A stretch of DNA of 64,000 nt, taken from NCBI GenBank assembly GCA_038087875.1, contig CM075988.1, positions 13,888,001 through 13,952,000 of the forward strand, written 5' to 3'. A program made the translations under genes and the position numbers. Below, in pieces: positions 9,190 to 56,374 of this stretch; positions within the stretch are counted from its first letter, which is position 1; every line of letters starts with the position of its first letter. Origin of the DNA: Malacoraja senta. Its lineage: Eukaryota. The notes beneath the pieces were generated by a model. It was not told the origin of the DNA, made no database searches, and saw only the letters and a program-made list of their open reading frames with translations.

Positions 9190-9480
9190 TTGGGGTGGCA
9201 CATTGGGGCAGCAATAGTGTTGCTGCATTACAGCGGCAGAGACCCAGGTTCGATCTGACAATGGGTGTTGTCTGTATGGAGTTTGTATGTTCTCCCTGTG
9301 ACCTTCTGGGTTTTCTCCGGGTGCTCCACTTTCCTCCCACATTCCAAAGAGATGCAGGTTTGTAGGTTGGCTTCTGTAAATTGTCCCTTCTGTGTGGGGT
9401 AGAACTTGTTGATCAGCATGGACTTGGTGGGCCAAAAGGCCTGTTTCATGCTATGTCTCTAAACTAAACTAAACTAAACT
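9190..9480 (+). mobile_element. HE1-like V-SINE
   Basis: Head, V-domain and (TAAAC)n tail. Confidence 0.9.
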
Positions 9481-10093
9481 TTCCAGATGCCATAGTGGGA
9501 TTCAAGTTCCTTTTGTTTGGATCACCAGCCAGGTCTCCGATAGCTTAGTAATGTAACTATTATGCTACCAAATCTTATCAAGCCTAAGAGAGCAATGCCT
9601 GGGCAAAGCTGAAATGTTAGTAAAGAAGCAAATTGTCCTGCATAAGTAGCACCATATGGGAAACTCTTTTGTGAGCTGCCAATGCTGCTTTGAAAGTACT
9701 GTATTTAATCATTGGCAAAATATGAAAAATAGTTCCATTTGGAGTCATCCATCACTGGCAGATTCTAGGATATAAGCAAGAACTTGCTAATAGCATGATC
9801 ATATTTTGCCAGTGATTGGATTATGTGTCACTTACAGTTCCAAGTGAGGTTTAAAGAGAATCTATTACAGTTGTGAGGAGGGTGAACAGCAACCAACTTA
9901 TTCAATACATTCAGTAGACAATAGGTGCAGGAGTAGGTCATTTATTGATGGTGAAAACATTGCTTAACAGCCCTCTGGATTCATGAGATGTTTATCCTCC
10001 ACTGGGACAAGTAGGCAACGGACTCCATGCTTTGGAGGCGGACTCGCTTGTACTGTGTGAGTTTTTGTAACGTAAATCAACGATCCAAATTGA

Positions 10094-10441
10094 TAATAAT
10101 AATAATAATGGATGGGATTTATATAGCGCCTTTCTAATACTCAAGGCGCTTTACATCGCATTATTCATTCACTCCTCAGTCACACTCGGTGGTGGTGAGC
10201 TACTTCTGTAGCCACAGCTGCCCTGGGGCAGACTGACGGAAGCGTGGCTGCTAATCTGCACCTACGGCCCCTCCGACCACCACCAATCACTCACACACAT
10301 TCACACACATTCACACGCAGGCAAAGGTGGGTGAAGTGTCTTGCCCAAGGACACAACGACAGTATGCACTCCAAGCGGGATTCGAACCGGCTACCTTCCG
10401 GTTGCCAGCCGAACACTTAGCCCATTGCGCCATCTGTCGCC
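10094..10441 (-). mobile_element. tRNA-derived SINE with CORE-like domain and L2-type tail (distinct family)
   Basis: Minus strand: A-box TGGCGCAATGG, B-box GGTTCGAATCC, GTGTCCTTGGGCAAGACACTT domain, tail AAGCGCCTTGAG..AAAGGCGCTATATAAAT plus (ATT)n. Confidence 0.85.
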
Positions 10442-10644
10442 TCCACAATCTGTCACCTCCACATGATGGGGTCGACCTACCCAATTTTCACTGACAGTGG
10501 ACAAGACAAACCCAGAAAATTTGCCTCAATGTCCTACCAAAAATGTAACACAATTACCATGTCATTGTTAAAAAATGTGTTTCCGGCTCCTCCTCCCAGT
10601 GTTTAAAACTGTTCCGAACTCTTCTCAGCCTTGGCCTAGAATCA

Positions 10645-10940
10645 ATGGAATAGAATTGAATACTTTATTTACTTTATTGTCACATGTGAAAAGGCACAAT
10701 GAAATTCTTTGCTTGCATATCCAATGTATACAAATAATGGCCACCTATGGCACTGACAAAGTTACAAAGTATTCCGGCTCCTCCTCTTGTTTCCCCCCCC
10801 CCCCCCCCCCACACCACGGTTCCAACACGCCGGGTCCCCATTGTCCTTTGTTCGCCCCCCCCCTGCCCATGCCGGGTCCTTCATTGTTCTCCCCCCCCCT
10901 CATGGCGGTCCCCCCACGCTCATTTGTCTGGTGAATGGTA
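10645..10940 (-). mobile_element. LINE-tail-like repeat (Rex/L2-type 3' end) with poly-C tracts on +
   Basis: TACTTTATTGTCACATGTG..GAAATTCTTTGCTTGCAT resembles reverse-complemented LINE 3' ends. Confidence 0.5.
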
Positions 10941-11274
10941 TCCTGCCATTCCAAAGTGTGCTACGAATGAATTTGTTCAGGCTGGCAGCACTGTCCTAGA
11001 AAAGTGGCCACACTTGTAACAGAGATTCAAGTGGTTATCACAAAGAAGTATTAAGATCATGCACCTTTACCTACGGGCACCAGGTCCTGTTCATTTTAAG
11101 GGATTCAATTTATCCAAACCTTCATCTTTGTACATGTTGAAGACCAATTGACTGATGACTTACTTAGTTCTTCCATCTTTCTGGTTACATGTCCAATAAC
11201 TTACATGAGGTCATTGGGTGCAAATGTATCTCTAATGTTTCTCTCTGTTTATAGACAGACTCTATGCATTTAGA

Positions 11275-11328
11275 GGGGTGCGAGATTGCCACCTTCACGT
11301 GGTCCGCCCTGTTTCGACTAATGCAATC
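11275..11328 (+). ncRNA. Predicted HDV/CPEB3-like ribozyme, copy A
   Basis: P1 GGGGUGc/CCGCCCU, P2 GAUUGCc/UGCAAUC, P3 ACC/GGU, L3 UUCACGU, J1/4 GU, UUCG mini-loop, J4/2 C-UAA with catalytic C at 11318. Confidence 0.8.
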
Positions 11329-11414
11329 AACCCGACGTGCCCAAACAAAAAGATCAAATAGAACAAGTTGACCAACAACTTTAGGCTGTGCACGCCATAC
11401 GCAAGAAGAGGTAG
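11275..11414 (+). mobile_element. Ribozyme-headed short retroposon, copy A
   Basis: Homologous to 19927-20070; flanked by ATGCATTTAGA (11264-11274) and ATGCATTCAGA (11415-11425); tail CCATACGCAAGAAGAG. Confidence 0.9.
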
Positions 11415-11649
11415 ATGCATTCAGAAACATTGCATACAAGATAAATGTTTACACATGATTCTCCGTCTTTTGATAAAAGATGTTGACACATCTAACATAC
11501 CAGTAATATTTGGCAATTGGAATATAATGTACCTGGATACAGGTACGCCAGCCTTCTGCCAAGCTATTTGCTCCCATAATCAAAATACAACATAAATTGA
11601 GTGAATGGAGGTCATCATTTTTTTTGCCATCTAACTAAGTCACTCATAT

Positions 11650-11775
11650 GTAAAGAAGGGTCCCGACCTGCAACGCTGCAAATGCATTCGCTTCAGAGCT
11701 GCTGTGTGACCCATTGAGTTACTCCAGCACTTTGTGTTTTGCTCAGGACTCCACCATTTGCAGTTCCTTGTGTCC
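11650..11775 (+). mobile_element. Penelope-like terminal fragment, decayed
   Basis: GAAGGGTCCCGACC..GAGTTACTCCAGCACTTTGTG..GCAGTTCCTTG. Confidence 0.7.
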
Positions 11776-11776
11776 G

Positions 11777-12060
11777 CATGGAAACAGGCCCTTCAGCCCA
11801 CTGAGTCCATTCCAACCAGCGTTCCCTGCACACTAACAATATCCGACACGCACTAGGGACAATTTGTATTTATACCAAGCTAATTAGTCTACAAACTTGT
11901 GCATCTTTGGAGTGTGGGAAGAAACCAGAGCTTCCCGGAGAAAATCCCTGCAGGTCACAGGGAGACCGTACAAATTCCATGCAGACAGCACCCATAGTCG
12001 GGATCGAACCTGGGTCTCTGGTACTGTAAGGCAGCAACTCTACCACTGCACCACCGTGCC
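11777..12060 (-). mobile_element. HE1-like V-SINE
   Basis: Same family, reverse orientation. Confidence 0.9.
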
Positions 12061-12789
12061 TTCCCTATTGCTTTGCAAACTATTGCAACATTGACTTCCA
12101 CTCCAAAGCATGGAAACCTTGGAACCATTGAAGATAAACACACGGTAAATCTAAATGGCCATGATGGCTGACATTAACCCTCCTTACAACTATAAATTCC
12201 CTTTAAACCTCACTGGGCTCTGTAAGTGTTACACAATCCAATCATTGGTAAAACCTGATTATTCTGTTTACAAGTTCTTATATACTGGAACCTGTTGGTG
12301 ATGGATGATTCCAACTGGAACTATATTTCATATTTTGCCAATGATTAAATATTTTTTTAATTAGCATTGACAGGTTACAGAAGAGTTTGTGTGGTCTAGT
12401 TTCCCACTTGGCTCCTTTTCTCCAGGGTATTTTGGTTCCTTTGTAAAATTTCAGCCTGAGAGACTCCGTTCATCTCTGTTCACCGGGAGACGACCACCAA
12501 TGTAGAGCACCCTCACCATGATTTTTAGGCTTGATTTATTATCTACCCTCAGATAAGGAACCCTGGAACACCATCCACTCACCCCCAGGAGAGCTTTGTC
12601 AATTTATAGGACTGAATAACGTGCTCCATGTTCACAATGCTGTCTCTGAAACACAGACAGTCAAACACCCATCCACCTGAACGCATCAGTTGTCTGAGGT
12701 ACATTTAATATGCATATACAGAAGGCCAAAAATTCCTCTTCAGTTCCTGTACTCAGTTGGATCAGCAGTGCATGCGAATAGCTTGTAAA

Positions 12790-13110
12790 CTAATCCCTTT
12801 TGCCTGCACATGATACATATCTTTCTGTTGCCTTTATATTTTTGTGCCTACCTAAAATCCTCTGAAATGTCACTATCATATCTGCTTCCATCATCTCCCT
12901 TGGCAGGCTTTCCAGACACCTACCGCTCTCTTTGTAAAAAATAAATACTTGCCCCACATACTGTATCTCCTTAAAACGTTTTCCCTTTGAGTTTATAGCT
13001 ATGCCGTCTGGTGTTTGGCATTTCCACCCCAGGAAAAAGGTTCTCACTGTCTACCTCTGATAATTTTATAAAGTTCTATTAGATCTCTACTCTTTTGACC
13101 CTTCAAAGAA
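12790..13110 (-). mobile_element. Decayed CR1 3' fragment
   Basis: Minus-strand SLPREMMEADMIVTFQRILGRH, a CR1 ORF2 C-terminal pattern. Confidence 0.75.
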
Positions 13111-13479
13111 AACAAAACCATCCAAAACGGCTACGAGTACTATTTACAACAAGGCGACATTCCAGCTATAGTATTAAAAACCTGTGCTCCAGAACAAACT
13201 ATGGATTTAACCAAGCTTTTCCAGCACAATAACAATGTTGACATTTACTTGAAGAGATGAAAATTTGCCCAGCTCTGTCATATTCATCAAAAGTAGAACA
13301 AACCCAATTCAACTAATTATTGCCCAAAGTCTACTCTCAATCATCATCGCACTGATGCAAGGTGCCATTAGCAGGGCTATCAAGCTGTACTTACTCGCCA
13401 ATAACATTTCACTGGTGCACAGTTTGACTTTCACAGGAATATTTGGCTCCAGACCTCATCACCAACAGAACAACGAGTT

Positions 13480-13830
13480 CAACTCCAGTGAGTGAGCCTG
13501 TTTTTTAAAATCAAGGCAACAATTGATCAAGTGTGGCATGAAAGAGTGATGGTAATAGCTATCAAGACAATAAGGATTGAAGTCATACCTTAGGTTATGG
13601 TTGTTGGAGTTCAGTCATCCCAGCCAAGACATCACATCAGGAGTTCCTGAGGGTGAGGCCCAACCATTTCCAGGTACTTCACCAATGACCTCTCTTCTAT
13701 CACCGGGTCTGAAATAGGAATATTTGCTGATCACTGCATGATATTGAATTTTATTTGCAACTCCTCAGAAAAAGACAGTCCAAATTCAGGCTAGGAGTGA
13801 TAATTAGTTAACATTTGTGCTATGTTAACT
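13480..13830 (+). mobile_element. Old LINE RT remnant
   Basis: TCAGGAGTTCCTGAGGG (SGVPxG) followed by TTCACCAATGACCTC and TTTGCTGAT (FAD) motifs. Confidence 0.6.
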
Positions 13831-19122: not shown

Positions 19123-19926
19123 GTCGCCCTGAAGAGTGGGGCCCTAAAGAGCCCTAAACTGCCAAATTGTGCCTTTGCCCTAAATAATCTGGCATGGTTA
19201 CTGAGTTTTTTATTACACATTTCAAACATGGTGTAAACGGTTTTATGATTTAGTTGATTAGTATATAGTAAACCAGCAGTTCTTATTGACACCTGGTCCT
19301 ATGCAACTCCCAATGAACATTGCTGGATAAACAGCCGAGAGTCCATCCCACCTTCTTACTGGTCTTTTATTATCTCACGCGTCAAGCTCTGCAACCCCTT
19401 TTTTATTACAGCAGTAAACCTGTTGAACATATGCATCAATTCGATTTATTTTTTTGTTATTTTAATAAAATATTGCAAAGAAAAAATAGAGGAACAATTG
19501 GTTAGTTGAACTAACTATGCCTATAAACATATTTCATCCCTTGATGCCTCTCATTCCAACCAGACAGTTGTACTATCTTCTTGTATTTTAGTTCATCATA
19601 TAGTTCTCAGAGTATGTCCTTCACTTTCTTGTTTGATTATACTGACTAATTTAAAAGTGTTATGGGTGTTAGATGTTTAAAATCTATGATTACTGGTAAT
19701 ATATAACAAAGATAAAGATCAAGACGAGATTGAAAATGAAAAGACTTGTTTTTACTGAAACATCAAAAATCTTTTTATTTCATTAGTTGGTAACCCAAGG
19801 TGCTATAATGTGGAAGTACAACACACTTCTAATTCAGGAATTCCTAATAGTCTTCTTGTGCTTTGTTCAATGGCACTCTACACATAAGCACTTCAATACT
19901 GAGTGCTGGTGAATTATAGAAATTGC

Positions 19927-19980
19927 GGGGTGGAAGATTGCAACCTTCACATGGTCTGCCCTGTTTAGACGAATGCAATC
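19927..19980 (+). ncRNA. Predicted HDV/CPEB3-like ribozyme, copy B
   Basis: P1 GGGGUGG/CUGCCCU, P2 GAUUGCA/UGCAAUC, P3 ACC/GGU, L3 UUCACAU, J4/2 C-GAA with catalytic C at 19970. Confidence 0.8.
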
Positions 19981-20070
19981 AACCCGGCGTGCACAATCAA
20001 ATAGGATCAAATATTGCAAGTAGTCCTACAACTTTAGGCTGTGCACGCCATACGCAAGAAGAAGAAGAAG
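19927..20070 (+). mobile_element. Ribozyme-headed short retroposon, copy B
   Basis: Perfect 10-bp TSD ATAGAAATTG (19916-19925 and 20071-20080); tail CCATACGC(AAG)5. Confidence 0.92.
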
Positions 20071-20704
20071 ATAGAAATTGGGAAAACATCACTATGGAAT
20101 CAAGTTTTGCAGTCATCCGATATCTAGTGATGATACATTTCTGCTGGAAGCAAAGGACCCAGATCAGGAGAGCATGCCAGTCTAATTCATTATTTTACTT
20201 CGGAGTCACGTGAGTGACTACGTGAAGAACCCCATCAGGGCGCATGCGCGTCATTACGTCGGACGCATTGGTGCGAACGGCAGCAGGAGCACGGACCTCC
20301 TGCTGCAGGTGAGTAGTTACAGCTCCACCAAAGTCGGGGAGACTTTGGAGGAGTTAGAGAAAAGTAAAGAAAGTGTTTCTGTGTGTTTTTTCCCCCACAT
20401 ACAGGAACAAGGAAAAGGTGCAGGCTGCTGCCGACAAGGAGAGAGAGAGCTGCGGGAAGCAGTCTCTGAAAGGCAGCCTGTCACCTCGGGGGAGTCGCAA
20501 GCCGGTAGCGGTGCGGCGACAGATTTGGCAAAGTGCCCAGCCGGGTACACAGCCAATGCCAGTCGGGCGGTCGGCATAACCCAAGTCAGTAAGGGCTATA
20601 GACTCCGCAGAGTCGGGACACGAGAGTCCCGTCGGGGACAGGATACCGTTCCCCAGCGGTTATCCAAAAGGAGCAGCTCATACAGGGGCTGCTCCACAGA
20701 GACG

Positions 20705-20955
20705 CTCCAGGAGGAGTAATGCAGGAGGGAAGCCACAGAGAAGGCTCCGCTGGCAGTGCCTAGGAGAGGTTCTGTTTCATAAAGCCACACTCCAGGAGGA
20801 GTAGTGCAGGCGGGAAGCCTTAGGGAAGGCTCCGCTGGCAGTGCCTAGGAGAGGCCTGCTTCATAAAGCCATACTCCAGGAGGAGTTGTGCAGGCGAGAG
20901 GCCGTGGGGACGGCTCAGCTGGCAGTGCCTAGTAGAGGCCTGCTTGAAAGCACCC
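20705..20955 (+). repeat. Tandem repeat of 84-85 bp x3 in the DIRS gag region
   Basis: CTCCAGGAGGAG recurs at 20705, 20790 and 20874. Confidence 0.9.
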
Positions 20956-21300
20956 TCTTTGCAAGAGGTGAGTGCAGAAGGGCAGATACGCTCTTACCCT
21001 GAGTCCGACGACTTCCAAAGGGAGGGCAGGCAGCTGTCAGAGCTGACACCGTGTGCAGCACGGTTTGCCATGTCGTCGGACGCTGGTGAGCCTCTGGGTG
21101 AGGAACTTGCCACCAGCATAAATTACCAAGTCTCACATCAGCTACAGGAGCTGACAATGGATGAGACAGTAACGAAGTATGAAGCCCCAATCAACTGTGG
21201 ACTGTTAAAAGTTCCTGTTGGGAACAGGAAGAATTGGGGCAAGATGGGCATACTAATGAAAGCCCAGGAGCATGTGAAGCTCCAGCATATTTTTAAAGTT
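20944..21300 (+). pseudogene. DIRS gag-like ORF remnant
   Basis: KYEAPINCGLLKVPV resembles the PxNCxxLxxP motif of DIRS ORF1; lies upstream of RT. Confidence 0.6.
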
Positions 21301-21452
21301 GCTGGCATCTGGTTGCCAGGTGGTGAGGAGGTAAGAGGGTCTGGTTCTCATGTAGACAGATCTAATGTGATACAATTAAATGTTTACCTCAGTTTATACT
21401 GAAGGTTATTCAAGGGCATCAAATAAAGCTTAATGCAAATTCTGATTTACCC

Positions 21453-22535
21453 ATGCAACATGTTCCAAAAAAGGAGTTTGACTTCAGTATCACTGAACAA
21501 TTGGAAGTTCAGCTGGAACTTGCAAGCTTATGTAATAAAGGTGTAATTGCTAAGGCAGTTTACCAAAGCCATCAGTTTGTGTCCAATATCTTTCCCAGAC
21601 CAAAAAAGGACGGGGGGATGCAGAATTATACAGACCTGAATAGTCTTAACCCTTTTGTACGGTATAGACATTTTAAGATGGAAACGTTTGTGAAGGAGAT
21701 CTTAAAGATGCGGATTCAGTGTCTGTTCATTTGCAGGATAGAAGATTTAAAATTCAACTGGATGGGGCAATTATGTCAATACAATCCACTGCCTAATGGT
21801 TTCTCTTCAGCTCCTAGAGGGATTACAAAGTTGTTAAAACCTATGCTAGGCATGATGAGAAGTCAAGGTCATGTGTTCATGGTTTAACTAGATAATATCT
21901 TGATAGTAGGACAATCAAAGGAAACAACTGGGCTTTATAAGCTATCCAGAGAAATCAACTGGGCTTTATAAGCTATCCAGAGAAATCTAAATTTATACCT
22001 GTGACACAAATTGACTAGTTGGGTTCACAATGGACTTAATCAACATCATTGTGACCTTGCCCAGGCAAAAAAGGGTAGAGCTAATTAAGAGCTATATCAA
22101 GTTAATTGCTAACACACAGCCTTCAATTAGCCAGGTGACAAGTCTGCTGTGGTAATGGCTGGCAGCTTTTCCAGCAGTTCAATATGGCCACTTTATTATC
22201 TACAATTGCAAAGGTCAAAGGAACAAGCATTGAGGATACATTGGGGTCATTATAATAGACCTATGCTTCTATCAATAGAGGCTGTTGCTGATGTACAATG
22301 GTGGATTCAGCATGTGTCCACTAGTAGTTCCAAAGTGTTATTGGACCAAGCTTCCATGATTTGCAGACAGATGTCAGAGCACTTGGGTAGGGTGCTACTG
22401 ATACAAGATCCAGCGGTGGAGACAGATGAACATTGCTTCTGCAAACATGGGGAATTAACCAAGAGTATTTTATGGACTCGAGGCTTATGGCACTAACTAA
22501 ACTAGTTTGCATATGCAGTGCAGTGCAAAATAGAC
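21453..22535 (+). pseudogene. DIRS reverse transcriptase and RNase H N-part, disrupted
   Basis: FVSNIFPRPKKDGG, RHFKMET, LPNGFSSAPR, V*LDNIL (YLDD destroyed), DVQWW; 31-bp duplication at 21925-21986. Confidence 0.92.
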
Positions 22536-22536
22536 A

Positions 22537-22630
22537 CTGCACAAAAGTGGATGGGTTGCACTTGAACCTGAGGGGGACCGATATCCTGGCGGGGAGATCT
22601 GCAAAGGCTACTGGGGAGACTTTAAACTAG
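22537..22630 (+). pseudogene. CR1 ORF1 C-terminal remnant (SGNH/esterase domain)
   Basis: DGLHLNLRGTDILAGR..LN*, containing the SGNH DxxH motif. Confidence 0.85.
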
Positions 22631-22635
22631 AATGG

Positions 22636-25600
22636 TTGGGGGGAGGGACTCAAATAGAGAATGCTATTAGACAGTGTGTGAGGCAGGAGGCAGAGAAGGA
22701 AAGCACTCAGACCCAACATGTAGGGGGGAAAGAAGAAAACAATAATAAACAGAGAATAAGAGGTGGTGGGGTTCTTAAATGGGTGAGCAGAGAAACAGAG
22801 GGGTGTAAAATGCGGGCGGAAGCAATAGGTAGCAAGGTGAAAGGTAAAAGTGGCAGGCAGACAAATCCAGGGCAAAAATCAAAAAGAGCCACTTTTCAAC
22901 ATAATTGTATAAGGGGTAAGAGCGTTGTAAAAACAAGCCTGAAGGCTTTGTGTCTCAATGCAAGGAGCATTCGTAATAAGGTGGATGAGTTGAACGTGCA
23001 GATAGCAATTAATGATTATGATATAGTTGGGATCACGGAGACATGGCTCCAAGGTGACCAAGGCTGGGAGCTGAACATCCAGGGATATTCAATATTCAGG
23101 AGGGATAGAGAGAAAGGAAAAGGAGGTGGGGTAGCGTTGCTGGTTAGAGAGGAGATTAACGCAGTGGAAAGGAAGGACATTAGCTTGGAGGATGTGGAAT
23201 CGGTATGGGTAGAGCTGCGAAACACTAAGGGGCAGAAAACGCTGGTGGGTGTTGTGTACAGGCCACCTAGCAGTAGTAGTGAAGTTGGGGATGGCATCAA
23301 ACAGGAAATTAGAAATGCGTGCAACAAAGGCAAAACAGTTATAATGGGTGACTTCAATCTACATATAGATTGGGTGAATCAAATTGGCAGGGGTGCTGAG
23401 GAAGAGGATTTCTTGGAATGTATGAGGGATAGTTATCTAAACCAACATGTAGAGGAACCAACGAGAGAGCAGGCTATTCTAGACTGGGTATTGAGTAATG
23501 AGGAAGGGTTAGTGAGCAGACTTGTTGTGCGTGCCCCCTTGGGCAAGAGTGATCATAATATGGTTGAGTTCTTCATTAGGATGGAGAGTGACATTGTTAA
23601 TTCAGAAACAACGGTTCTGAACTTAAAGAAAGGTAACTTTGAGGGTATGAGATGTGAATTGGCCAAGATTGACTGGCAATTAGTTCTAAAAGGGTTGATG
23701 GTGGATATGCAATGGAAGGCATTTAAAGACTGCATGGATGAACTACAAAAATTGTTCATCCCAGTTTGGCAAAAGAATAAATCAAGGAAGGTAGTGCATC
23801 CGTGGATAACAAGGGAAATCAGGGATAGTATCAAAGCAAAAGATGATGCGTACAAATTAGCCAGAAAAAGCAGCATACCAGAGGACTGGGAGAAATTCAG
23901 AGACCAGCAGAGGAGGACAAAGGGCTTAATTAGGAAAGGGAAAATAGATTATGAAAGGAAACTGGCAGGGAACATAAAAACTGACTGCAAAAGTTTTTAT
24001 AGATATGTGAAGAGAAAGAGATTAGTTAAATCAAATGTAGGTCCCTTGCAGTCAGAAACAGGTGAATTGATCATGGGGAACAAGGATATGGCAGACCAAT
24101 TGAATAACTACTTTGGTTCCGTCTTCACTAAGGAAGACATAAATAATCTGCCGGAAATAGCAGGGGGCCGCGGGTCAAAGGAGATGGAGGAACTGAGTGA
24201 AATCCAGGTTAGTCGGGAAGTGGTGTTGGGTAAATTGAATGGATTAAAGGCCGATAAATCCCCAGGGCCAGATAGGCTGCATCCCAGAGTACTTAAGGAA
24301 GTAGCTCCAGAAATAGTGGATGCATTAGTGATAATTTTTCAAAACTCTTTAGATTCTGGAGTAGTTCCTGAGGATTGGAGGGTAGCAAACGTAACCCCAC
24401 TTTTTAAGAAGGGAGGGAGAGAGAAAACGGGGAATTACAGACCAGTTAGTCTAACATCGGTAGTGGGGAAACTGCTAGAGTCAGTTATTAAAGATGGGAT
24501 AGCAGCACATTTGGAAAGTGGTGAAATCATTGGACAAAGTCAGCATGGATTTACGAAAGGTAAATCGTGTCTGACGAATCTTATAGAATTTTTCGAGGAT
24601 GTAACTAGTAGAGTGGATAGGGGAGAACCAGTGGATGTGTTGTATCTGGACTTTCAGAAGGCTTTCGACAAGGTACCACATAAGAGATTAGGATACAAAC
24701 TTAAATCACACGGTATTGGGGGTTCAGTATTGATGTGGATAGAGAACTGGCTGGCAAACAGGAAGCAAAGAGTAGGAGTAAACGGGTCCTTTTCACAATG
24801 GCAGGCAGTGACTAGTGGGGTACCGCAAGGCTCAGTGCTGGGACCCCAGCTATTTACAATTTATATTAATGATCTGGACGAGGGAATTGAAAGCAACATC
24901 TCCAAGTTTGCGGATGACACTAAGCTGGGGGGCAGTGTTAGCTGTGAGGAGGATGCTAGGAGACTGCAAGGTGACTTGGATAGGCTGGGTGAGTGGGCAA
25001 ATGTTTGGCAGATGCAGTATAATGTGGATAAATGTGAGGTTATCCACTTTGGTAGCAAAAACGGGAAGGCAGACTATTATCTAAATGGTGGCCGATTAGG
25101 AAATGGGGAGATGCAGCGAGACCTGGGTGTCATGGTACACCAGTCATTGAAAGTAGGCATGCAGGTGCAGCAGGCAGTGAAGAAAGCGAATGGTATGTTG
25201 GCCTTCATAGCAAGAGGATTTGAGTATAGGAGCAGGGAGGTTCTACTGCAGTTGTACAGGGTCTTGGTGAGACCACACCTGGAGTATTGCGTACAGTTTT
25301 GGTCTCCAAATCTGAGGAAGGACATTATAGCCATAGAGGGAGTGCAGCGAAGGTTCACCAGACTGATTCCTGGGATGTCAGGACTTTCATATGAAGAAAG
25401 ACTGGATAGACTTGGCTTATACTCGCTAGAATTTAGGAGATTGAGAGGGGATCTTATAGAAACGTACAAAATTCTTATGGGGTTGGACAGGCTAGATGCA
25501 GGAAGATTGTTCCCGATGTTGGGGAAGTCCAGGACAAGGGGTCACAGCTTAAGGATAAGGGGGAAATCCTTTAAGACCGAGATGAGGAAAAACCTTTTCA

Positions 25601-25746
25601 CACAGAGAGTGGTGAATCTCTGGAACTCTCTGCCACAGAGGGTAGTTGAGGCCAGTTCATTGGCTATATTTAAGAGGGAATTAGATGTGGCCCTTGTGGC
25701 TAAAGGGATCAGGGGGTATGGAGAGAAGGCAGGTACGGGATACTGA
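22636..25746 (+). CDS. CR1 ORF2: APE endonuclease plus reverse transcriptase, uninterrupted 1036 codons
   Basis: LNARS, GITETW, GDFN, SDH; QHGF, LDFQKAFDKV, GVPQGSVLGP, FADD. Track start is TTG; first ATG is at 22810. Confidence 0.97.
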   Translation: MGGGTQIENAIRQCVRQEAEKESTQTQHVGGKEENNNKQRIRGGGVLKWVSRETEGCKMRAEAIGSKVKGKSGRQTNPGQKSKRATFQHNCIRGKSVVKTSLKALCLNARSIRNKVDELNVQIAINDYDIVGITETWLQGDQGWELNIQGYSIFRRDREKGKGGGVALLVREEINAVERKDISLEDVESVWVELRNTKGQKTLVGVVYRPPSSSSEVGDGIKQEIRNACNKGKTVIMGDFNLHIDWVNQIGRGAEEEDFLECMRDSYLNQHVEEPTREQAILDWVLSNEEGLVSRLVVRAPLGKSDHNMVEFFIRMESDIVNSETTVLNLKKGNFEGMRCELAKIDWQLVLKGLMVDMQWKAFKDCMDELQKLFIPVWQKNKSRKVVHPWITREIRDSIKAKDDAYKLARKSSIPEDWEKFRDQQRRTKGLIRKGKIDYERKLAGNIKTDCKSFYRYVKRKRLVKSNVGPLQSETGELIMGNKDMADQLNNYFGSVFTKEDINNLPEIAGGRGSKEMEELSEIQVSREVVLGKLNGLKADKSPGPDRLHPRVLKEVAPEIVDALVIIFQNSLDSGVVPEDWRVANVTPLFKKGGREKTGNYRPVSLTSVVGKLLESVIKDGIAAHLESGEIIGQSQHGFTKGKSCLTNLIEFFEDVTSRVDRGEPVDVLYLDFQKAFDKVPHKRLGYKLKSHGIGGSVLMWIENWLANRKQRVGVNGSFSQWQAVTSGVPQGSVLGPQLFTIYINDLDEGIESNISKFADDTKLGGSVSCEEDARRLQGDLDRLGEWANVWQMQYNVDKCEVIHFGSKNGKADYYLNGGRLGNGEMQRDLGVMVHQSLKVGMQVQQAVKKANGMLAFIARGFEYRSREVLLQLYRVLVRPHLEYCVQFWSPNLRKDIIAIEGVQRRFTRLIPGMSGLSYEERLDRLGLYSLEFRRLRGDLIETYKILMGLDRLDAGRLFPMLGKSRTRGHSLRIRGKSFKTEMRKNLFTQRVVNLWNSLPQRVVEASSLAIFKRELDVALVAKGIRGYGEKAGTGY

Positions 25747-46399: not shown

Positions 46400-49300
46400 A
46401 TAGTTAATGAATGGAGCCCATATTTTAACAAAATGTTCTTGTTTGTCCATTAAGACAAGTCTAATTCTTTCTAGATGTAGGGTCTCTGACATTTCCACAA
46501 TCCACATTTTAATTGTGGGGTTTATAGGACCTTTCCAAAATTTTAATATTTATTTTTCCCCAGTTATTATACTGTAGTCAAGGAAGTTTCTTTGGCTTGT
46601 TGTGAGTGTTAAACTTTGTTCTAATATCCCAAGTATTATTAATTTTGAGTCTGGATCCAATTTAGTATTAACAACTTCAGAAATTATTTCAAAAATATCA
46701 ATCCAGAAATTTTTGATTTTTATACAATTTGCAAAAGTATGTGTTAAATTGGCCTCTAGATGTAGGCATTTATCACAGATAGGAGAAATATGTGGGAAGA
46801 TTCTATTTAGTTTTATTTTGGAGTAATGTAATCTGTGTAAGACTTTAAATTGTATTAAAGCATGTCTGGCATTTAACGAGCATTGATGTATATGTTGTAA
46901 ACTTTCGTTCCAAATGTCTTTCGTTATAGAGTAACCTAACTCATTTTCCCATGTGTGTCTATATAGTTCCATCGGTGGTACCTCATTGTTTAAGAGGGTG
47001 TTATAAATATAAGCTATTAATTTTTCAGTGTTAGGATGCTTATTCAAACATTCATCAAGAATTTCTGGTTCCCTAGTCCTATATACTTGTGTATTAGATT
47101 TAACATAATCTCTAATTTGTAGATATCTGAAAAAATTATTTGAGTGTAGTCCATAATTTTGTTGTAACTCTTGAAATGACAGAAAGATGCCTTCCCTATA
47201 AAGATGTCCAATCTTTTTAATTACATAATGTTTCCATTGTATAAAACCTCTATCCAATATGGATGGCTTGAATAAAGGATTATTTACAATGGGAAGACAT
47301 AGTGGTATATTATTCAGTTTTAAAGCTTTTTTTAATTGTTTCCAAATTCGTATTCCACTATGTATTATAGGGTTTTCCTTATAGGTTTTTTTATTCAATT
47401 TTGTGGGAGCAAATATAATCGAACCAATTTCAAAAGGTAAACAGTCTTCCTTTTCCATCCTTAACGTATCTGAATATTGATCCATTTCTTCCAGCCAGAA
47501 ATTCATGTTTTTAATATGGACTGCCCAAAAATAAAGTAAGAAATTTGGCAAAGCCAAACCTCCGTTGCTCTTTGACTTACATAAATGTTTTTTACTTATT
47601 CTATGATTCTTATAATCCCAAATATAGCTTGTAACAATGGAGTCTACTTTTTTGCAAACGTTTTTTGGGATATATATCGGAATTAATTGAAATAGGTACA
47701 GTAGTTGCGGTAAGAAGATCATTTTTATAGCATTAATTCTACCAAGCATTGAAATGGGAATTGTTTTCCAGTACTGAATATTCTTGTGTAATTTATTAAG
47801 TAAGGGTGGAAAATTTAGTTTAAATAAAGAGGTATATGTCTTAGTTACATAGATTCCTAAATATTTAAGTTAATCTTTAACTATTTTAAAAGGGGATTGT
47901 TGCAATGTATTTAAATTGAATTTTGTTATTGGCATGATTTCAATTTTATTCCAGTTAATTCTATATCCTGAGAACTGACCAAATTGAGTTATTAGATTTA
48001 ATAGATTTGGAATACTAGTTTCTAACTTTGTGATATATATTAGTACATCATCTGCATATAAGGAAATTTTATTCCTTGTATCTCTAGTGTTGTACCCGTG
48101 TATTCCTGGATGGGTTCTAACGCTTTCTGCTAATGGTTCAATTGCAAGAGCAAATAATAGTGGGGATAGTGAGCATCCTTGTCTGCAACCTCTAGAAAGA
48201 TTAAATTTAGCTGATAACATTTGGTTTGTTAATATTCTAGCTGTTGGATTGGAGTATAACAGTTTAATCCATGTACAGTACTTCTCTCCTAGTTGAAATT
48301 TTTCCATTACCGAAAATAAATATGACCATTCTACCTGGTCAAATGCTTTTTCAGCATCTAACGATATAATTGCTAGATCTGCATTAAGAATTCTATTTGT
48401 ATATATAATATTGAATAGTCTTCTCAAATTATAAAATGAATAACATTTTGGAATAAAACCAGTTTGGTCAGGGTGTATTAATTTGTTAATCACTAAGCTC
48501 AATCTATGAGATAGGATTTTGGTTAATATTTTTTGATAAGTATTTAAGAGAGCTATTGCTCTATATGAACCTGGGTCTTCAGGATCCTTATCCGTTTTTG
48601 GTATAAGTATGATTGTAGATTCATTTAGAGTTTCTGGGAGTTTCTGTTGAGTATAAACTTATTTGTATAGTGTCTGTAGGTGTGGAGAAATCAGATCGTA
48701 AATTTTTAAATAAAATTCAGAGCTTAGACCATCAGGACCTGAGGCCTTTCCATTTTTTAAAGATCTAATTGACTCTTCGATGTCTTTTACCGTAATTTCT
48801 GCATTTAGTGATTCTCTCTTTCTGATCTAAACCTGTAAGGTTACATTTCTGTAGAAATGTTTCCATTCCTGCTGATTGTTCTGTCATTTTAGATGAGTAC
48901 AGTTTTTGATAGTATTGTAAAAATCTATCATTAATATCTTTAGGCAGTGTTAATATTTCTCCCTTGTCTGATCTAATTTTGTAAATTGTTTTTTCCCCGT
49001 CCAGTTTACGAAGTTGACGCGCCAATAGTTTTTGTGGTTTATCACCAAATTCAAAGTTTAATTGTTTTGTGTGTTGATATAGTTTTATAACTTGGTCTGA
49101 ATATATCTTGTTTAACTTATATTTCAGTACTGCAATTTTATTGTGTTTTGCCATAGATGGTGCTATTGCATTTTCTATATCTAATTGCCTTATTTCCATT
49201 TCCAAAGTCTGTTATTTGGCCCTATTCTCTTTGTTAAGAAATGATTGCGAAGAGATTAGTGCTCCTCGCACAAATGCTTTAAATGTTTCCCAAAGAAGGG

Positions 49301-52134: not shown

Positions 52135-55100
52135 ATACATAAGATTTCTTAAGACAGTTTGTAAAGTATTGACTCCTGCAGCCACAGACATTTCACTTGC
52201 ACTACACCATCTGGGTCTAAGTAATATTCTCATGGCATCATTATAAGCTACTTTAAGTCTCTGTAAGATTGTGTTTCTGTAGTTTGACCACAGCTGTGCA
52301 GTATAGCATGGTGTACAATATGCTCTGAGACTAAGATTATTATCAGACAATTTAAAATCAGGAAATTTTAGACATTTGAACTACAGATCATAACAGCACT
52401 CTTACCAGCATTATATTTAATATCATGTTCTACACCATACACAGAACATATAGTAAGGAGCTGCTGGAGGCCAGCGCTAGATGGACTAAAGACCGCAAGA
52501 TCATCTGCATACATAATATGATTCACTAGAGTATTACCAATCATGCACCCATTATTACAGGCTTTCAATTGTTTGGACATATCATCAATATAGAGATTAA
52601 AAAGAACTGGGGACAAAATTCCCCCTTGTCTGACACCATTGCTAACCCCAAATGGAGCTGAGACCCTATTAACCCATTTTACTTGCATAGTCTGGTGGAC
52701 ATACCATTAAGCCAGAATTCTCACAATGTATTTAGGCACCCCTCTGACTCAATTTAACAAACAACTTTCTATGATCAGGATCAAACAGGATCAAAGGCTT
52801 ACGAAGCATCAATACAGCACATAAGAATTGATGAGTTGTTAGCTCTATTTGTTACAATTTCCTTTAAGGCATATATACACGTCAGTGCCATGTTTAGCCT
52901 TAAAACCAAACTGGTTATCTGTGGAGTTAACAAACTCATTTAATCTATCCAGTAGAATTATTTCTAGGACTTTTGACAATATGCTGGCTAAAGCTATGGG
53001 CCTGTAATTATTTAGGCTGCTTACTTTATCAGCTTTGTCCTTAATGACTGGCAATAACAAAACAGACAACATTGAGTCTGGTAACAAGCCATGAATCATA
53101 AAGCCAGTAAAACAAATAGTAAGGTGAGGAGCTATCCTCATACTGACATATTTAAGATGTTCAGCAGAAATATGATCTAAGCCGCTTGCTTTGTTGTCGG
53201 ACAGCTTGTTCATAGCTTGATACACCTCATGTGACATAATCACCATTGAATCATTACTCTCAATATTGTCCACCCTATACAAGTCACCTTGGACACAGTT
53301 TGATAGAGTACTAAAATGCTGTCGCCATAACTCTGCGATATTAGCTGTTCTGGAGATTCCATCAACAGTGCATGGTGAAGACGTTTTGCAGTCGTCAAGA
53401 ACTCTCACTATTTTCCAAAAATCAGTAGCATTGTTACTTAGCAGCTTCTTAGCCATGGAATCAGCCCTCATAGCTTGCTCATTTTTACAGGTGAAGCGAA
53501 CAGCATACTTATATCTTGCATTAGTGAGCTTCTTGTATTCAAGCACAGGCCCTTGTCTGGGTCTACCTGCCATAGCCCATAATTTAGTGGCTTCACAGGC
53601 TTCAGCATAATCCTCAGCTACATACTTATTCCAGCCAGGCCTGATGTTGTGTGTCTTATTTTAATGCTTGCTGTAGGGCTTACTGCCCACATATAAAGTG
53701 CTTACAATATCATTATACATGGAGCAGATATCTCTCCTATGCTTCACATCCTTACAATTAACACTACTACACATAATTGCATCTTTAGGTAGATGCATAT
53801 TGCTTAAGTATTTATCTGTATGAGAATAATAGGCTAAGATGTTTTCCTTTGTGAGGGTTGACCAGTCTAGTTTTTTTGTGTTAACACTAATTTCATCTCT
53901 GGATACCACAGGTAGATGTTTAACATTTATTGGCATAGCACCAGGTATATGATCAGTCATTGCTGTCCCTTACAGAATGCTCAAACACCTCAATGAGGGA
54001 TGTGCATCAGCTGTACTAATACAATGGTCCAGCCATGACGTAGTGTGCCAGGCCTCACTAATATAAATATAACTATCTGTAGGTAAAAGCACTTTGCTTG
54101 ACAATATAAAATTATTATCTTGACAGAACTGAGCCATATGATTGGCAAATAATGAGTTCCTGTCTGAGATATCTGCATTCATATCCCCAATGACATATAC
54201 ACTAGAATTATTATTGTTTTTGAATATAGGAATAGATGAAAACAAGCCTATTTAAATATTAATCCTCATTCTGATGGCATTCATAGGGTGTATACACATT
54301 TAGGATATCAAATTCCTTGTTGTTGTGAGTAAAGTGTATTGCTATACACCAGTCAGCATCAAGCCCGACAACATTTATTGATGTCAAGCTTCTTGTTCCA
54401 TAGATTAGCCACAGCCCCTGATATCCTACCTCTGACTATTCCCATGCCAAGGTCAGTTGTAGATTCCCCAGCCCCATGAAAGTGATCATTGAGAGAATTT
54501 AGTTTGTCCAAGTCTTGCTTTGCTAAAAATGTCTCTTGCATACATAGTATGGCACAGTTCTCCAACTATGCGGCAAGCTTTATCCCCTGCGCTCTGGCCC
54601 AAACGCAGGCCGCAACAGTTGTACGACATAAGCCGAGAGCACCAGCAGGTACACTCATTCCCCCGCAGCAGGCGCAGTGCTTGATCCGATGACTCCAACC
54701 CTGCGTGGCTCGTAATAGCGCCGGACAAATGCCCCTTCTGGCCAGAGCTCCGGATTGTACATTTCGCCAACCTCATTGCATTCCGCAGATACTTTAAATG
54801 AACAGTATCTACTGTGTACAGTGTCAATCTTTTGACAGGTAACCTCACGACCAAGTTTCTCTTTAAGATACACAAATAAAGTTTTGGCATCTCGATCTGG
54901 TGAAACATTCACCAGCTTAGTCTTGACCATTTTGATGTTACTCGCAGCTCTGGTGCCAACAATAGGTATAAGGTTACCGGATTTCTTTTTCTGTCCAGGG
55001 GTAATAGTGCACAATCTTGGCTTACCAGCAGCGTTCTCTGGAACATGATTCCTCTTTGGCGAGCCTGGTAAAGACGTTAATCCACTGGGACTATCCATTG

Positions 55101-56374
55101 TCGTAGCCCCCTCCACATTTAAAGCGAGGCCCCAGGCCGCAACTCTCACTCCGGCGACCAAGCCTGAGGCTCCTGCCGGTGCAGCCCCCAGCGCTGTGCC
55201 TTCCATACTAGTGGCTCCACTGACGCTGACGCATCCCGATTACCGCTCAGAGTCGGGTCAGTGGGTCGCTCCAATGCACACACTCAGCAATTAATTTTCA
55301 CTGTGATGGCACGGAAATCTTTGCTTACATCAGCCTGTAGCTGCACGGTGTGCTTCGTAGAATAGACCTCAGCGTGCAGCTGCTCCATTCTCCCAAGTAG
55401 GCTCGAGACATCCATGTTGGTAAATGTCACCGGCGGCGGTTCATCCAAGGAAAGAGAGACAAATCTGGGAGTATTCTCCCCACACTCATTCATTACTTTA
55501 AGGCCACTCTTTATGTTATTGACGTCTTTCTGTGTCCCTTTCTGGGAAACGTTCCGCTGTGTAGTGGGGCAGAGTTCAAACAAAACTTTCTTCGAGGACA
55601 CTATCCACTCGGAATCATAAGTGTTTGCAGCCAGTAGGACGATCTCGTACTGGCTTAATGTCTTCATTTTTACAGCGAGTAAGTTAAGCAGCTCATTCTC
55701 CATAATAACTTTACAGTCAACAGTCTTGTAGATTTCAGGTTTTATTCGAGACCGGCTAAAAACAGGAGCAGCTGAACCTTGTGGTGCAATGTCTGCCATG
55801 TTGTAAATTGGTTTTATGTTTGAATATAGAAGCTTACAATCTCCGCATGTCTTGATTAATGCACAACCTGAAAAGCAAGAGGTACTCCATGACTTCTAAA
55901 CTGGGAGATAGTATTGAGCTTAAGTAAACGATAGACAACAAACTATCCACAGGCAGTTTGCACCTCCACATGAATCGCATGAGTACCTCATGAGAATGTT
56001 TTTGCTCATCTGGCACCTTTCATCAGCTTCTGTTCTGCATTCTCCAGTCACACTTGAGCATGAAGATCGACTTCGAGCGATTGAAAGCCACAATCAGATT
56101 AGAGTGGTATCCTGAACACACACTGCCTGCATCAATAGCCAGTGTAATATGCTCTTCTCTTTTCACAATAGCCAGTGGAAGTTGGGATGTGGTTGATGAT
56201 AGCACGGCCAGATTCTGAGAAGCCACTTTTGTAGACAACCGCAGACCTTTGGGTGAAGCGACACTTGCAGAGAGGCCTGTTAAGGAGATCAATCGGCACT
56301 GGGTCAATGGTGAAGCTTTTCCAAGTCAGCATGGTCGGTGACATGAAGGAAAGGGTGATGTTCCCACCTCGATG

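Follow-up and report, generated by a model that had tools for sequence, protein, structure and literature searches.

A short (AAG)n-tailed retroposon of Malacoraja senta headed by a putative P4-less HDV-like ribozyme

What fixes the 5′ end of a repeat in which no promoter can be recognized? The question is raised by two copies of a short retroposon in a 64,000-nucleotide stretch of Malacoraja senta DNA (assembly GCA_038087875.1, contig CM075988.1, forward-strand positions 13,888,001 to 13,952,000; hereafter the window, numbered from its first letter). The copy at 19927–20070, copy B, is the main subject of this study; copy A, at 11275–11415, is 86% identical to it, with 14% of positions different. 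Judging from sequence, we propose with a probability of roughly 0.8 that the element is an abundant, promoter-less, bipartite non-autonomous derivative of a long interspersed nuclear element (LINE), whose 5′ end is defined by a minimal ribozyme of the hepatitis delta virus (HDV) type that lacks helix P4. Four observations support this proposal: the repeat boundary falls on the predicted first nucleotide of the ribozyme, the family consensus carries the core nucleotides, helices covary among relatives that share the core, and an analogous LINE exists. A first-pass annotation of the window had suggested a promoter-less element whose HDV-like head sets the 5′ end and which is mobilized by an (AAG)n-tailed LINE, and in this outline our results support it.

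Anatomy of the element and predicted fold of its head

Direct reading of the sequence gives copy B a length of 144 bp on the plus strand. It is flanked by a perfect 10-bp target-site duplication (TSD), ATAGAAATTG, at 19916–19925 and 20071–20080, and a single extra C (19926) separates the left repeat from the first base of the element. Downstream of the head lie a variable body (19981–20039), in which non-CpG variation and body-swapping joints cluster, and a 3′ domain (20040–20070) that consists of the 3′ arm of a stem, ATACGC and (AAG)5. The tail of copy B is CCATACGC(AAG)5, with the AAG repeats at 20056–20070, and the 3′ end of the element reads ...GGCTGTGCACGCCATACGC(AAG)n. The stem is a perfect 10-bp pairing of GGCGTGCACA (19986–19995) with TGTGCACGCC (20040–20049) that encloses the variable body and adjoins the tail; in copy A this inverted repeat is degraded. 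A role as recognition structure for the protein of a partner LINE is plausible, and a TAG at 20035–20037 may be a relic of the stop codon of the parent LINE. Copy A together with its TSDs occupies 11264–11426 on the plus strand. Its TSDs, ATGCATTTAGA (11264–11274) and ATGCATTCAGA (11416–11426), are 11 bp long, differ at one base and abut the element directly; the ribozyme head spans 11275–11328, followed by the body and a degraded tail to 11415. Like copy B, it ends with CCATACGC and then AAG repeats.

An open reading frame (ORF) search over copy B found no ORF across the element, and a motif search found no A or B box of RNA polymerase III (Pol III) in either copy at up to two mismatches. Rfam models detect no similarity to tRNA, 5S or 7SL anywhere in the window, and none to snRNA in the element. 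Lack of an ORF, TSDs and a 3′ microsatellite tail are the hallmarks of bipartite non-autonomous LINEs, and all three are present; the features that would identify a Pol III-transcribed short interspersed nuclear element (SINE), namely an A and a B box or a head of tRNA, 5S or 7SL origin, are missing. The lack of Pol III boxes, the perfect TSD ending one nucleotide ahead of the element and the short body with its (AAG)5 tail had all been described in the first-pass annotation and hold on re-reading.

The first 54 nucleotides of copy B (19927–19980, with 19927 numbered as G1) match an HDV-like double pseudoknot with its parts in canonical order, P1-P2-P3-L3-P3′-P1′-P1.1-(P4)-J4/2-P2′. P1 pairs GGGGUGG (19927–19933, nt 1–7) with CUGCCCU (19956–19962, nt 30–36), including a G1·U36 wobble and two further wobbles. 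After J1/2 (AA, 19934–19935, nt 8–9), P2 joins GAUUGCA (19936–19942, nt 10–16) to UGCAAUC (19974–19980, nt 48–54) with seven of seven pairs. P3 and L3 occupy 19943–19955, where ACC/GGU (nt 17–19/27–29) closes the seven-nucleotide L3 (19946–19952, nt 20–26), which reads TTCACAT in copy B and TTCACGT in both the family consensus and copy A. The segment 19956–19964 holds the 3′ strand of P1, CTGCCCT (CCGCCCT in the consensus), followed by G37 and U38, which would form P1.1 with L3. The place of P4 is taken by a five-nucleotide linker (19965–19969, nt 39–43), TTAGA in copy B and TTCGA in the consensus. The last segment, 19970–19980, comprises J4/2, CGAA (nt 44–47), whose first base, C44 (19970), is the candidate catalytic C, and the 3′ strand of P2, TGCAATC. 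Cleavage is predicted 5′ of G1, that is, at the first base of the element. This is the fold proposed in the first-pass annotation, whose P1, P2, P3, GU and C-GAA could all be re-read; of the "minimal P4" that it also listed, a short stretch at the expected place stands and a P4 hairpin does not.

A deliberately loose HDV descriptor matches the window twice, at copy B and at a site of low complexity. In twenty simulated 64-kb windows with the dinucleotide make-up of the real one, the same descriptor finds a mean of 0.3 sites per window, or about 2e-6 per position. Chance therefore falls far short of explaining a match whose start coincides with the first base of a retroposon. Two further core matches in the window, at 1748 and 27596, are weak and at chance level, and we rejected them.

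Boundary, consensus and covariation beyond the window

For a view of the whole family we aligned Logan contigs from four sequencing runs of four organisms (three DNA, one RNA) to positions 19827–20170 at 80% likeness. Each DNA run contributes 9,240–13,524 contigs on the element and the RNA run 782. Summed word depth on the element reaches millions, against 35–90 in the unique downstream flank, which points to thousands of copies, depth not being itself a copy number. In all four runs the best-supported point at which contigs diverge into unrelated sequence lies directly before 19927 (in 124, 169, 214 and 30 contigs, with a flank agreement of about 0.35). On the 3′ side divergence falls at 20062–20071, and the end of the repeat is placed at 20064–20071. 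Since unrelated upstream flanks stop at 19927 in every run, the repeat begins exactly at G1 throughout the family. Whether 5′ ends cluster at G1 or scatter was a check proposed with the first-pass annotation, and clustering is what we see.

Copy B departs from the consensus at 19951, 19957, 19967, 20004, 20014–20016 and 20022. At 19951, A>G accounts for 76–98% of summed depth in the four runs and restores G25 and with it the L3 sequence UUCACGU, which had been named as the consensus beforehand. At 19957, T>C accounts for 71–94% and gives a G6-C31 pair, with all seven P1 pairs formed in the consensus. Every core nucleotide is thus present in the consensus: the G1·U wobble, U20, C22 and G25 in L3, GU for P1.1 and C as the first base of J4/2. 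All head variants at 5% or more fall on one of four CpG sites or an adjoining base. The candidate catalytic C (19970) sits in a CpG, yet its C>T share of depth is only 2–5%, compared with 16–68% reached by CpGs in the body. The body has many non-CpG variants and is wholly replaced in some contigs, and in the last 35 nucleotides (20036–20070) all variants stay below 5%. Pairing survives the CpG-decay variants at 19957 and 19958, which is weak evidence for the helices.

The individual copies in the window are less well preserved than this consensus. Copy B has the L3 change G25A (19951) and two extra G·U pairs in P1. The U20·G25 wobble is believed to place the catalytic metal ion (PMC4836649), and its loss through G25A probably makes copy B dead or slow as a ribozyme, slow cleavage having been suspected from the sequence at first reading; both copy A and the consensus have the G. 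In copy A, L3 is an intact TTCACGT, J4/2 is CTAA and the candidate catalytic C is C11318; it too fits the fold, with a single mismatch in each of P1 (C7/C30) and P2 as its lesions. CUAA, as in copy A, is the commonest J4/2 among the core-sharing ribozyme matches described next.

To find relatives, we scanned metagenome contigs (labeled L) for a fixed core in which GGGG is followed after a gap by TTCACGT and then, six free bases on, by CCCTGT. The scan returned 120 loci, or 110 distinct matches. All six pairs left unconstrained by the search, P1 pairs 5–7 and the three of P3, are formed in 34 of the 110, where chance would give about 0.3 and controls with one strand slid give 0–8; the 34 contain 16 distinct pair combinations. 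In 68 matches the fold is complete once P2 is located downstream, and P1 pairs 5–7 each show five to six pair types. P2 is wholly different between families, for example GACAGAU/AUCUGUC, UGAGCUUC/GAAGCUCA, UAGCAUC/GAUGCUA and CAGUGUC/GACACUG; as the parse forces P2 to pair, its diversity and not its pairing counts as evidence. Pair counts come from parsing the matches in fixed register and by descriptor (Python), the MAFFT alignment having misaligned P1 and P2 because junction lengths vary. Covariation of P1, P2 and P3 is strong across families with the same core, and the helices of the element are another compatible set for that core. Two of these contigs deserve separate mention. On the minus strand of L006 (oriented positions 12720–12832), a truncated ribozyme head (nt 1–41) stands in tandem ahead of a complete one from the LINE family described below. 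L040, which bears a ribozyme of the GGGGGGC family, also has a histone 3′ stem-loop according to Rfam (913–957), which marks this contig as animal DNA within a metagenome.

Relatives among LINEs and ribozymes

In the largest metagenomic family (for example L079, L098, L106 and L050), the flanks upstream of the ribozyme are unrelated as far as its G1. The ribozyme head is followed in the same orientation by APE and reverse transcriptase (RT) domains; homology between copies ends about 3.3 kb downstream of the head, and the 3′ end consists of a stop codon, an untranslated region (UTR) of about 45 nucleotides and AAG repeats. L090, L025 and L056 are internal-deletion derivatives of this LINE, 280–420 nucleotides long, that keep the ribozyme head and the 3′ end, and TSDs adjoining G1 are visible around L090 and L056. 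The LINE shares with our element a head with the same core (30 of 38 positions equal the consensus, including AA in J1/2), an (AAG)n tail and derivatives reduced to head and tail. Unlike the element, it has a 7-bp P4 hairpin, and its 3′ UTR sequence is unrelated. A LINE with this type of head and tail and with bipartite derivatives supports the existence of an (AAG)n-tailed partner LINE and does not tell us its clade. An atlas search with the LINE returned only "reverse transcriptase, Chordata", with chordate nearest clusters, and its C-terminal Cys-His motif gives no reliable separation of RTE from Vingi. RTE is as possible a clade for the partner as the Ingi/Vingi type; Vingi is not among the clades listed in 2018 as ribozyme-bearing (PMC5786205). 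A search for an autonomous LINE sharing both head and tail, proposed as a check with the first-pass annotation, thus yields none in the window and an analogous pair of LINE and derivative in the metagenome contigs. The 3′ domain of the element itself has no match in a scan of the metagenome.

The window contains other LINE sequence. A CR1-type LINE (20190–25746) lies directly downstream of copy B, with an intact ORF2 of 1036 amino acids (22636–25746; RVT_1 and Exo_endo_phos domains) that reaches no more than 66% identity to any protein in the collection. On the minus strand, at 46550–48502 and 52845–55799, are further LINE fragments that match reverse transcriptases, and neither has the 3′ end of the element.

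Ribozyme-headed LINE derivatives that lack an ORF, retain only the 5′ and 3′ ends of a LINE, are mobilized in trans and are flanked by TSDs have been described before (PMC5786205; PMC3414825; PMC4035085), and the principle is established for R2, L1Tc/Ingi and RTE. NARTc, RIME and SIDER (L1Tc/Ingi), the R2 SIDEs and the RTE- and Vingi-derived elements share with the present element a ribozyme-defined 5′ terminus, the lack of an ORF and TSDs. In contrast to these elements, it is much shorter (about 140 nucleotides), has no P4, ends in (AAG)n and resides in an animal genome. Our literature search found no P4-less ribozyme heading a eukaryotic retroposon and no ribozyme-headed element this small. 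Nor did it find a ribozyme-headed retroposon in cartilaginous fish, in agreement with the first-pass annotation, which knew of no such description.

Similarly minimal ribozymes are known in a different setting. drz-Mtgn-1 has the same layout with TTTAGA in place of P4, and theta ribozymes that have been tested show cleavage in vitro, which a C-to-U change abolishes (PMC10879173). The scan also recovered two P4-less HDV-like ribozymes, L046:751–806 and L078:1315–1373 (minus strand), that lie in tRNA clusters directly after tRNA-Thr and tRNA-Pro, respectively, with the five-nucleotide linkers UUUGA and UUUCA replacing P4. Because they abut tRNA 3′ ends, we assign them to the phage theta ribozymes; Rfam 15 reports their tRNAs and not the ribozymes. 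drz-Mtgn-1 and the theta ribozymes resemble the element in having a 7-bp P1 with G1·U, a 3-bp P3, a seven-nucleotide L3, a short linker and a CNRA J4/2. A P2 of 7–8 bp is likewise common to the minimal ribozymes and the element, and L3 is UUCACGU in L046 and L078. The theta ribozymes differ from the element in being found in phage genomes directly after tRNA genes, where they serve tRNA 3′ trailer processing. When the element is held against the theta class, the P4-less fold fits, and instead of an upstream tRNA there is a TSD-flanked retroposon.

The first-pass annotation had compared the head to the mammalian CPEB3 ribozyme. The mouse CPEB3 L3, taken from a primer sequence, is UUCACGU (PMC10919898), J4/2 is C57-G58-A59-A60, and P1.1 comprises one G-C and one U-U pair (PMC4836649). 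Nucleotides 1–38 align with the element without gaps, and L3 (seven of seven), CCCUGU, P1.1 and CGAA are identical. Unlike the element, the CPEB3 ribozyme has a P4 hairpin, other helix sequences and a single-copy intronic location conserved in mammals; it has been reported as not found outside mammals (PMC8233481). As a member of the CPEB3 family (RF00622) the element fails on three counts, having no Rfam match at E ≤ 10, no P4 and a dispersed repeat in place of a single locus. The identities are real, and they are not specific, because theta ribozymes of phages and the ribozymes of several LINE families also have this L3, the GU and a CNRA junction. As far as sequence comparison can tell, the resemblance is one of functional core, with the U20·G25 metal site and the C22-G37 pair, and indicates no specific relationship.

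Proposed cycle, alternatives and meaning

In the cycle that we envisage, a source copy would be transcribed within a longer host or read-through transcript, and the ribozyme would cut 5′ of G1, shedding upstream sequence and fixing the RNA 5′ terminus. The 3′ stem and (AAG)n end would then be recognized by a partner LINE of the APE type, and target-primed reverse transcription of the RNA up to G1 would leave full-length copies that start at G1 between TSDs of 10–11 bp.

Several observations weigh against a ribozyme-defined element mobilized in this way. Both copies in the window carry ribozyme lesions, and no partner LINE is found within the 64 kb. The helix covariation rests on other families, as only two copies are readable within the family of the element itself. 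In the RNA run 30 contigs retain upstream flank, and no RNA 5′-end signal was seen in these data, which are contigs only. Methods based on ligation recover HDV-type cleavage products poorly. Nested-only folding of the 54 nucleotides is no better than that of shuffled sequences (z = +0.84 and –0.31), as expected for a pseudoknot. Finally, Rfam gives no HDV or CPEB3 match to the element, either at its gathering threshold or at E ≤ 10. A comparison with these models had been proposed at the outset, and the control makes it uninformative: Rfam also misses the theta ribozymes beside tRNAs and the LINE ribozymes that do have P4, and we therefore give its silence no weight.

The unremarkable folding energies and the Rfam result would also suit a head that is a conserved remnant of a LINE 5′ UTR, kept for transcription or for binding of the partner protein and HDV-like in shape without cleaving. 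A second function of this kind is conceivable, as one and the same stretch of 77 nucleotides in L1Tc acts as promoter and ribozyme both (PMC3383444). We nevertheless consider a non-cleaving remnant unlikely, in view of a consensus that has every catalytic-core position, helices that covary across core-sharing families and a 5′ boundary that sits on G1. P4-less ribozymes of known activity, moreover, have the same L3 (TTCACGT), GT and CCCT, with a closely similar linker and J4/2.

Two other explanations appear much less probable still. The ribozyme could be real and yet serve mainly for something other than 5′-end definition, as an internal ribosome entry site (IRES)-like or protein-binding module or as a cutter of host introns. 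For the ribozymes of R2 and L1Tc an activity of the IRES kind has been suggested (PMC6765202), and CPEB3 shows that a host can retain an intronic HDV-like ribozyme. The element, however, has no ORF to be translated, the two copies read here have diverged from one another and are both damaged in the ribozyme, and 5′ processing predicts just such an exact match between G1 and the boundary of the repeat; we regard a different main role as very improbable. Slightly more improbable in our judgement is an ordinary Pol III SINE with an unrecognized promoter, its 5′ end being the transcription start. A size of about 140 bp, a high copy number and a LINE-type tail are typical of SINEs, but the searches for Pol III boxes and for tRNA, 5S, 7SL and snRNA similarity came back empty, and a Pol II-type LINE has the same type of head at its 5′ end.

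With the P4-less ribozyme head as the preferred explanation, the element would carry the ribozyme-defined 5′ end beyond site-specific LINEs and those of protozoa, to a tiny and highly successful animal retroposon, for which a 54-nucleotide ribozyme and a 3′ recognition module of about 60 nucleotides appear sufficient. It would place P4-less HDV-like ribozymes in a eukaryote, the literature searched having them only from metagenomes and phages, and would put thousands of potential self-cleavage sites within host transcripts. As a compact natural module for 5′ processing, it may be relevant to the LINE systems under development as gene-insertion tools. A bolder and quite tentative possibility is that theta-like P4-less HDV ribozymes occur beyond phages as the heads of a promoter-less "ribozyme-SINE", with thousands of copies in several species of an animal lineage. 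If so, intact intronic copies would cut host pre-mRNAs, and a captured head would be a concrete candidate for the origin, so far untraceable, of single-copy intronic ribozymes such as CPEB3, for which we put forward descent from a retroposon as a hypothesis.
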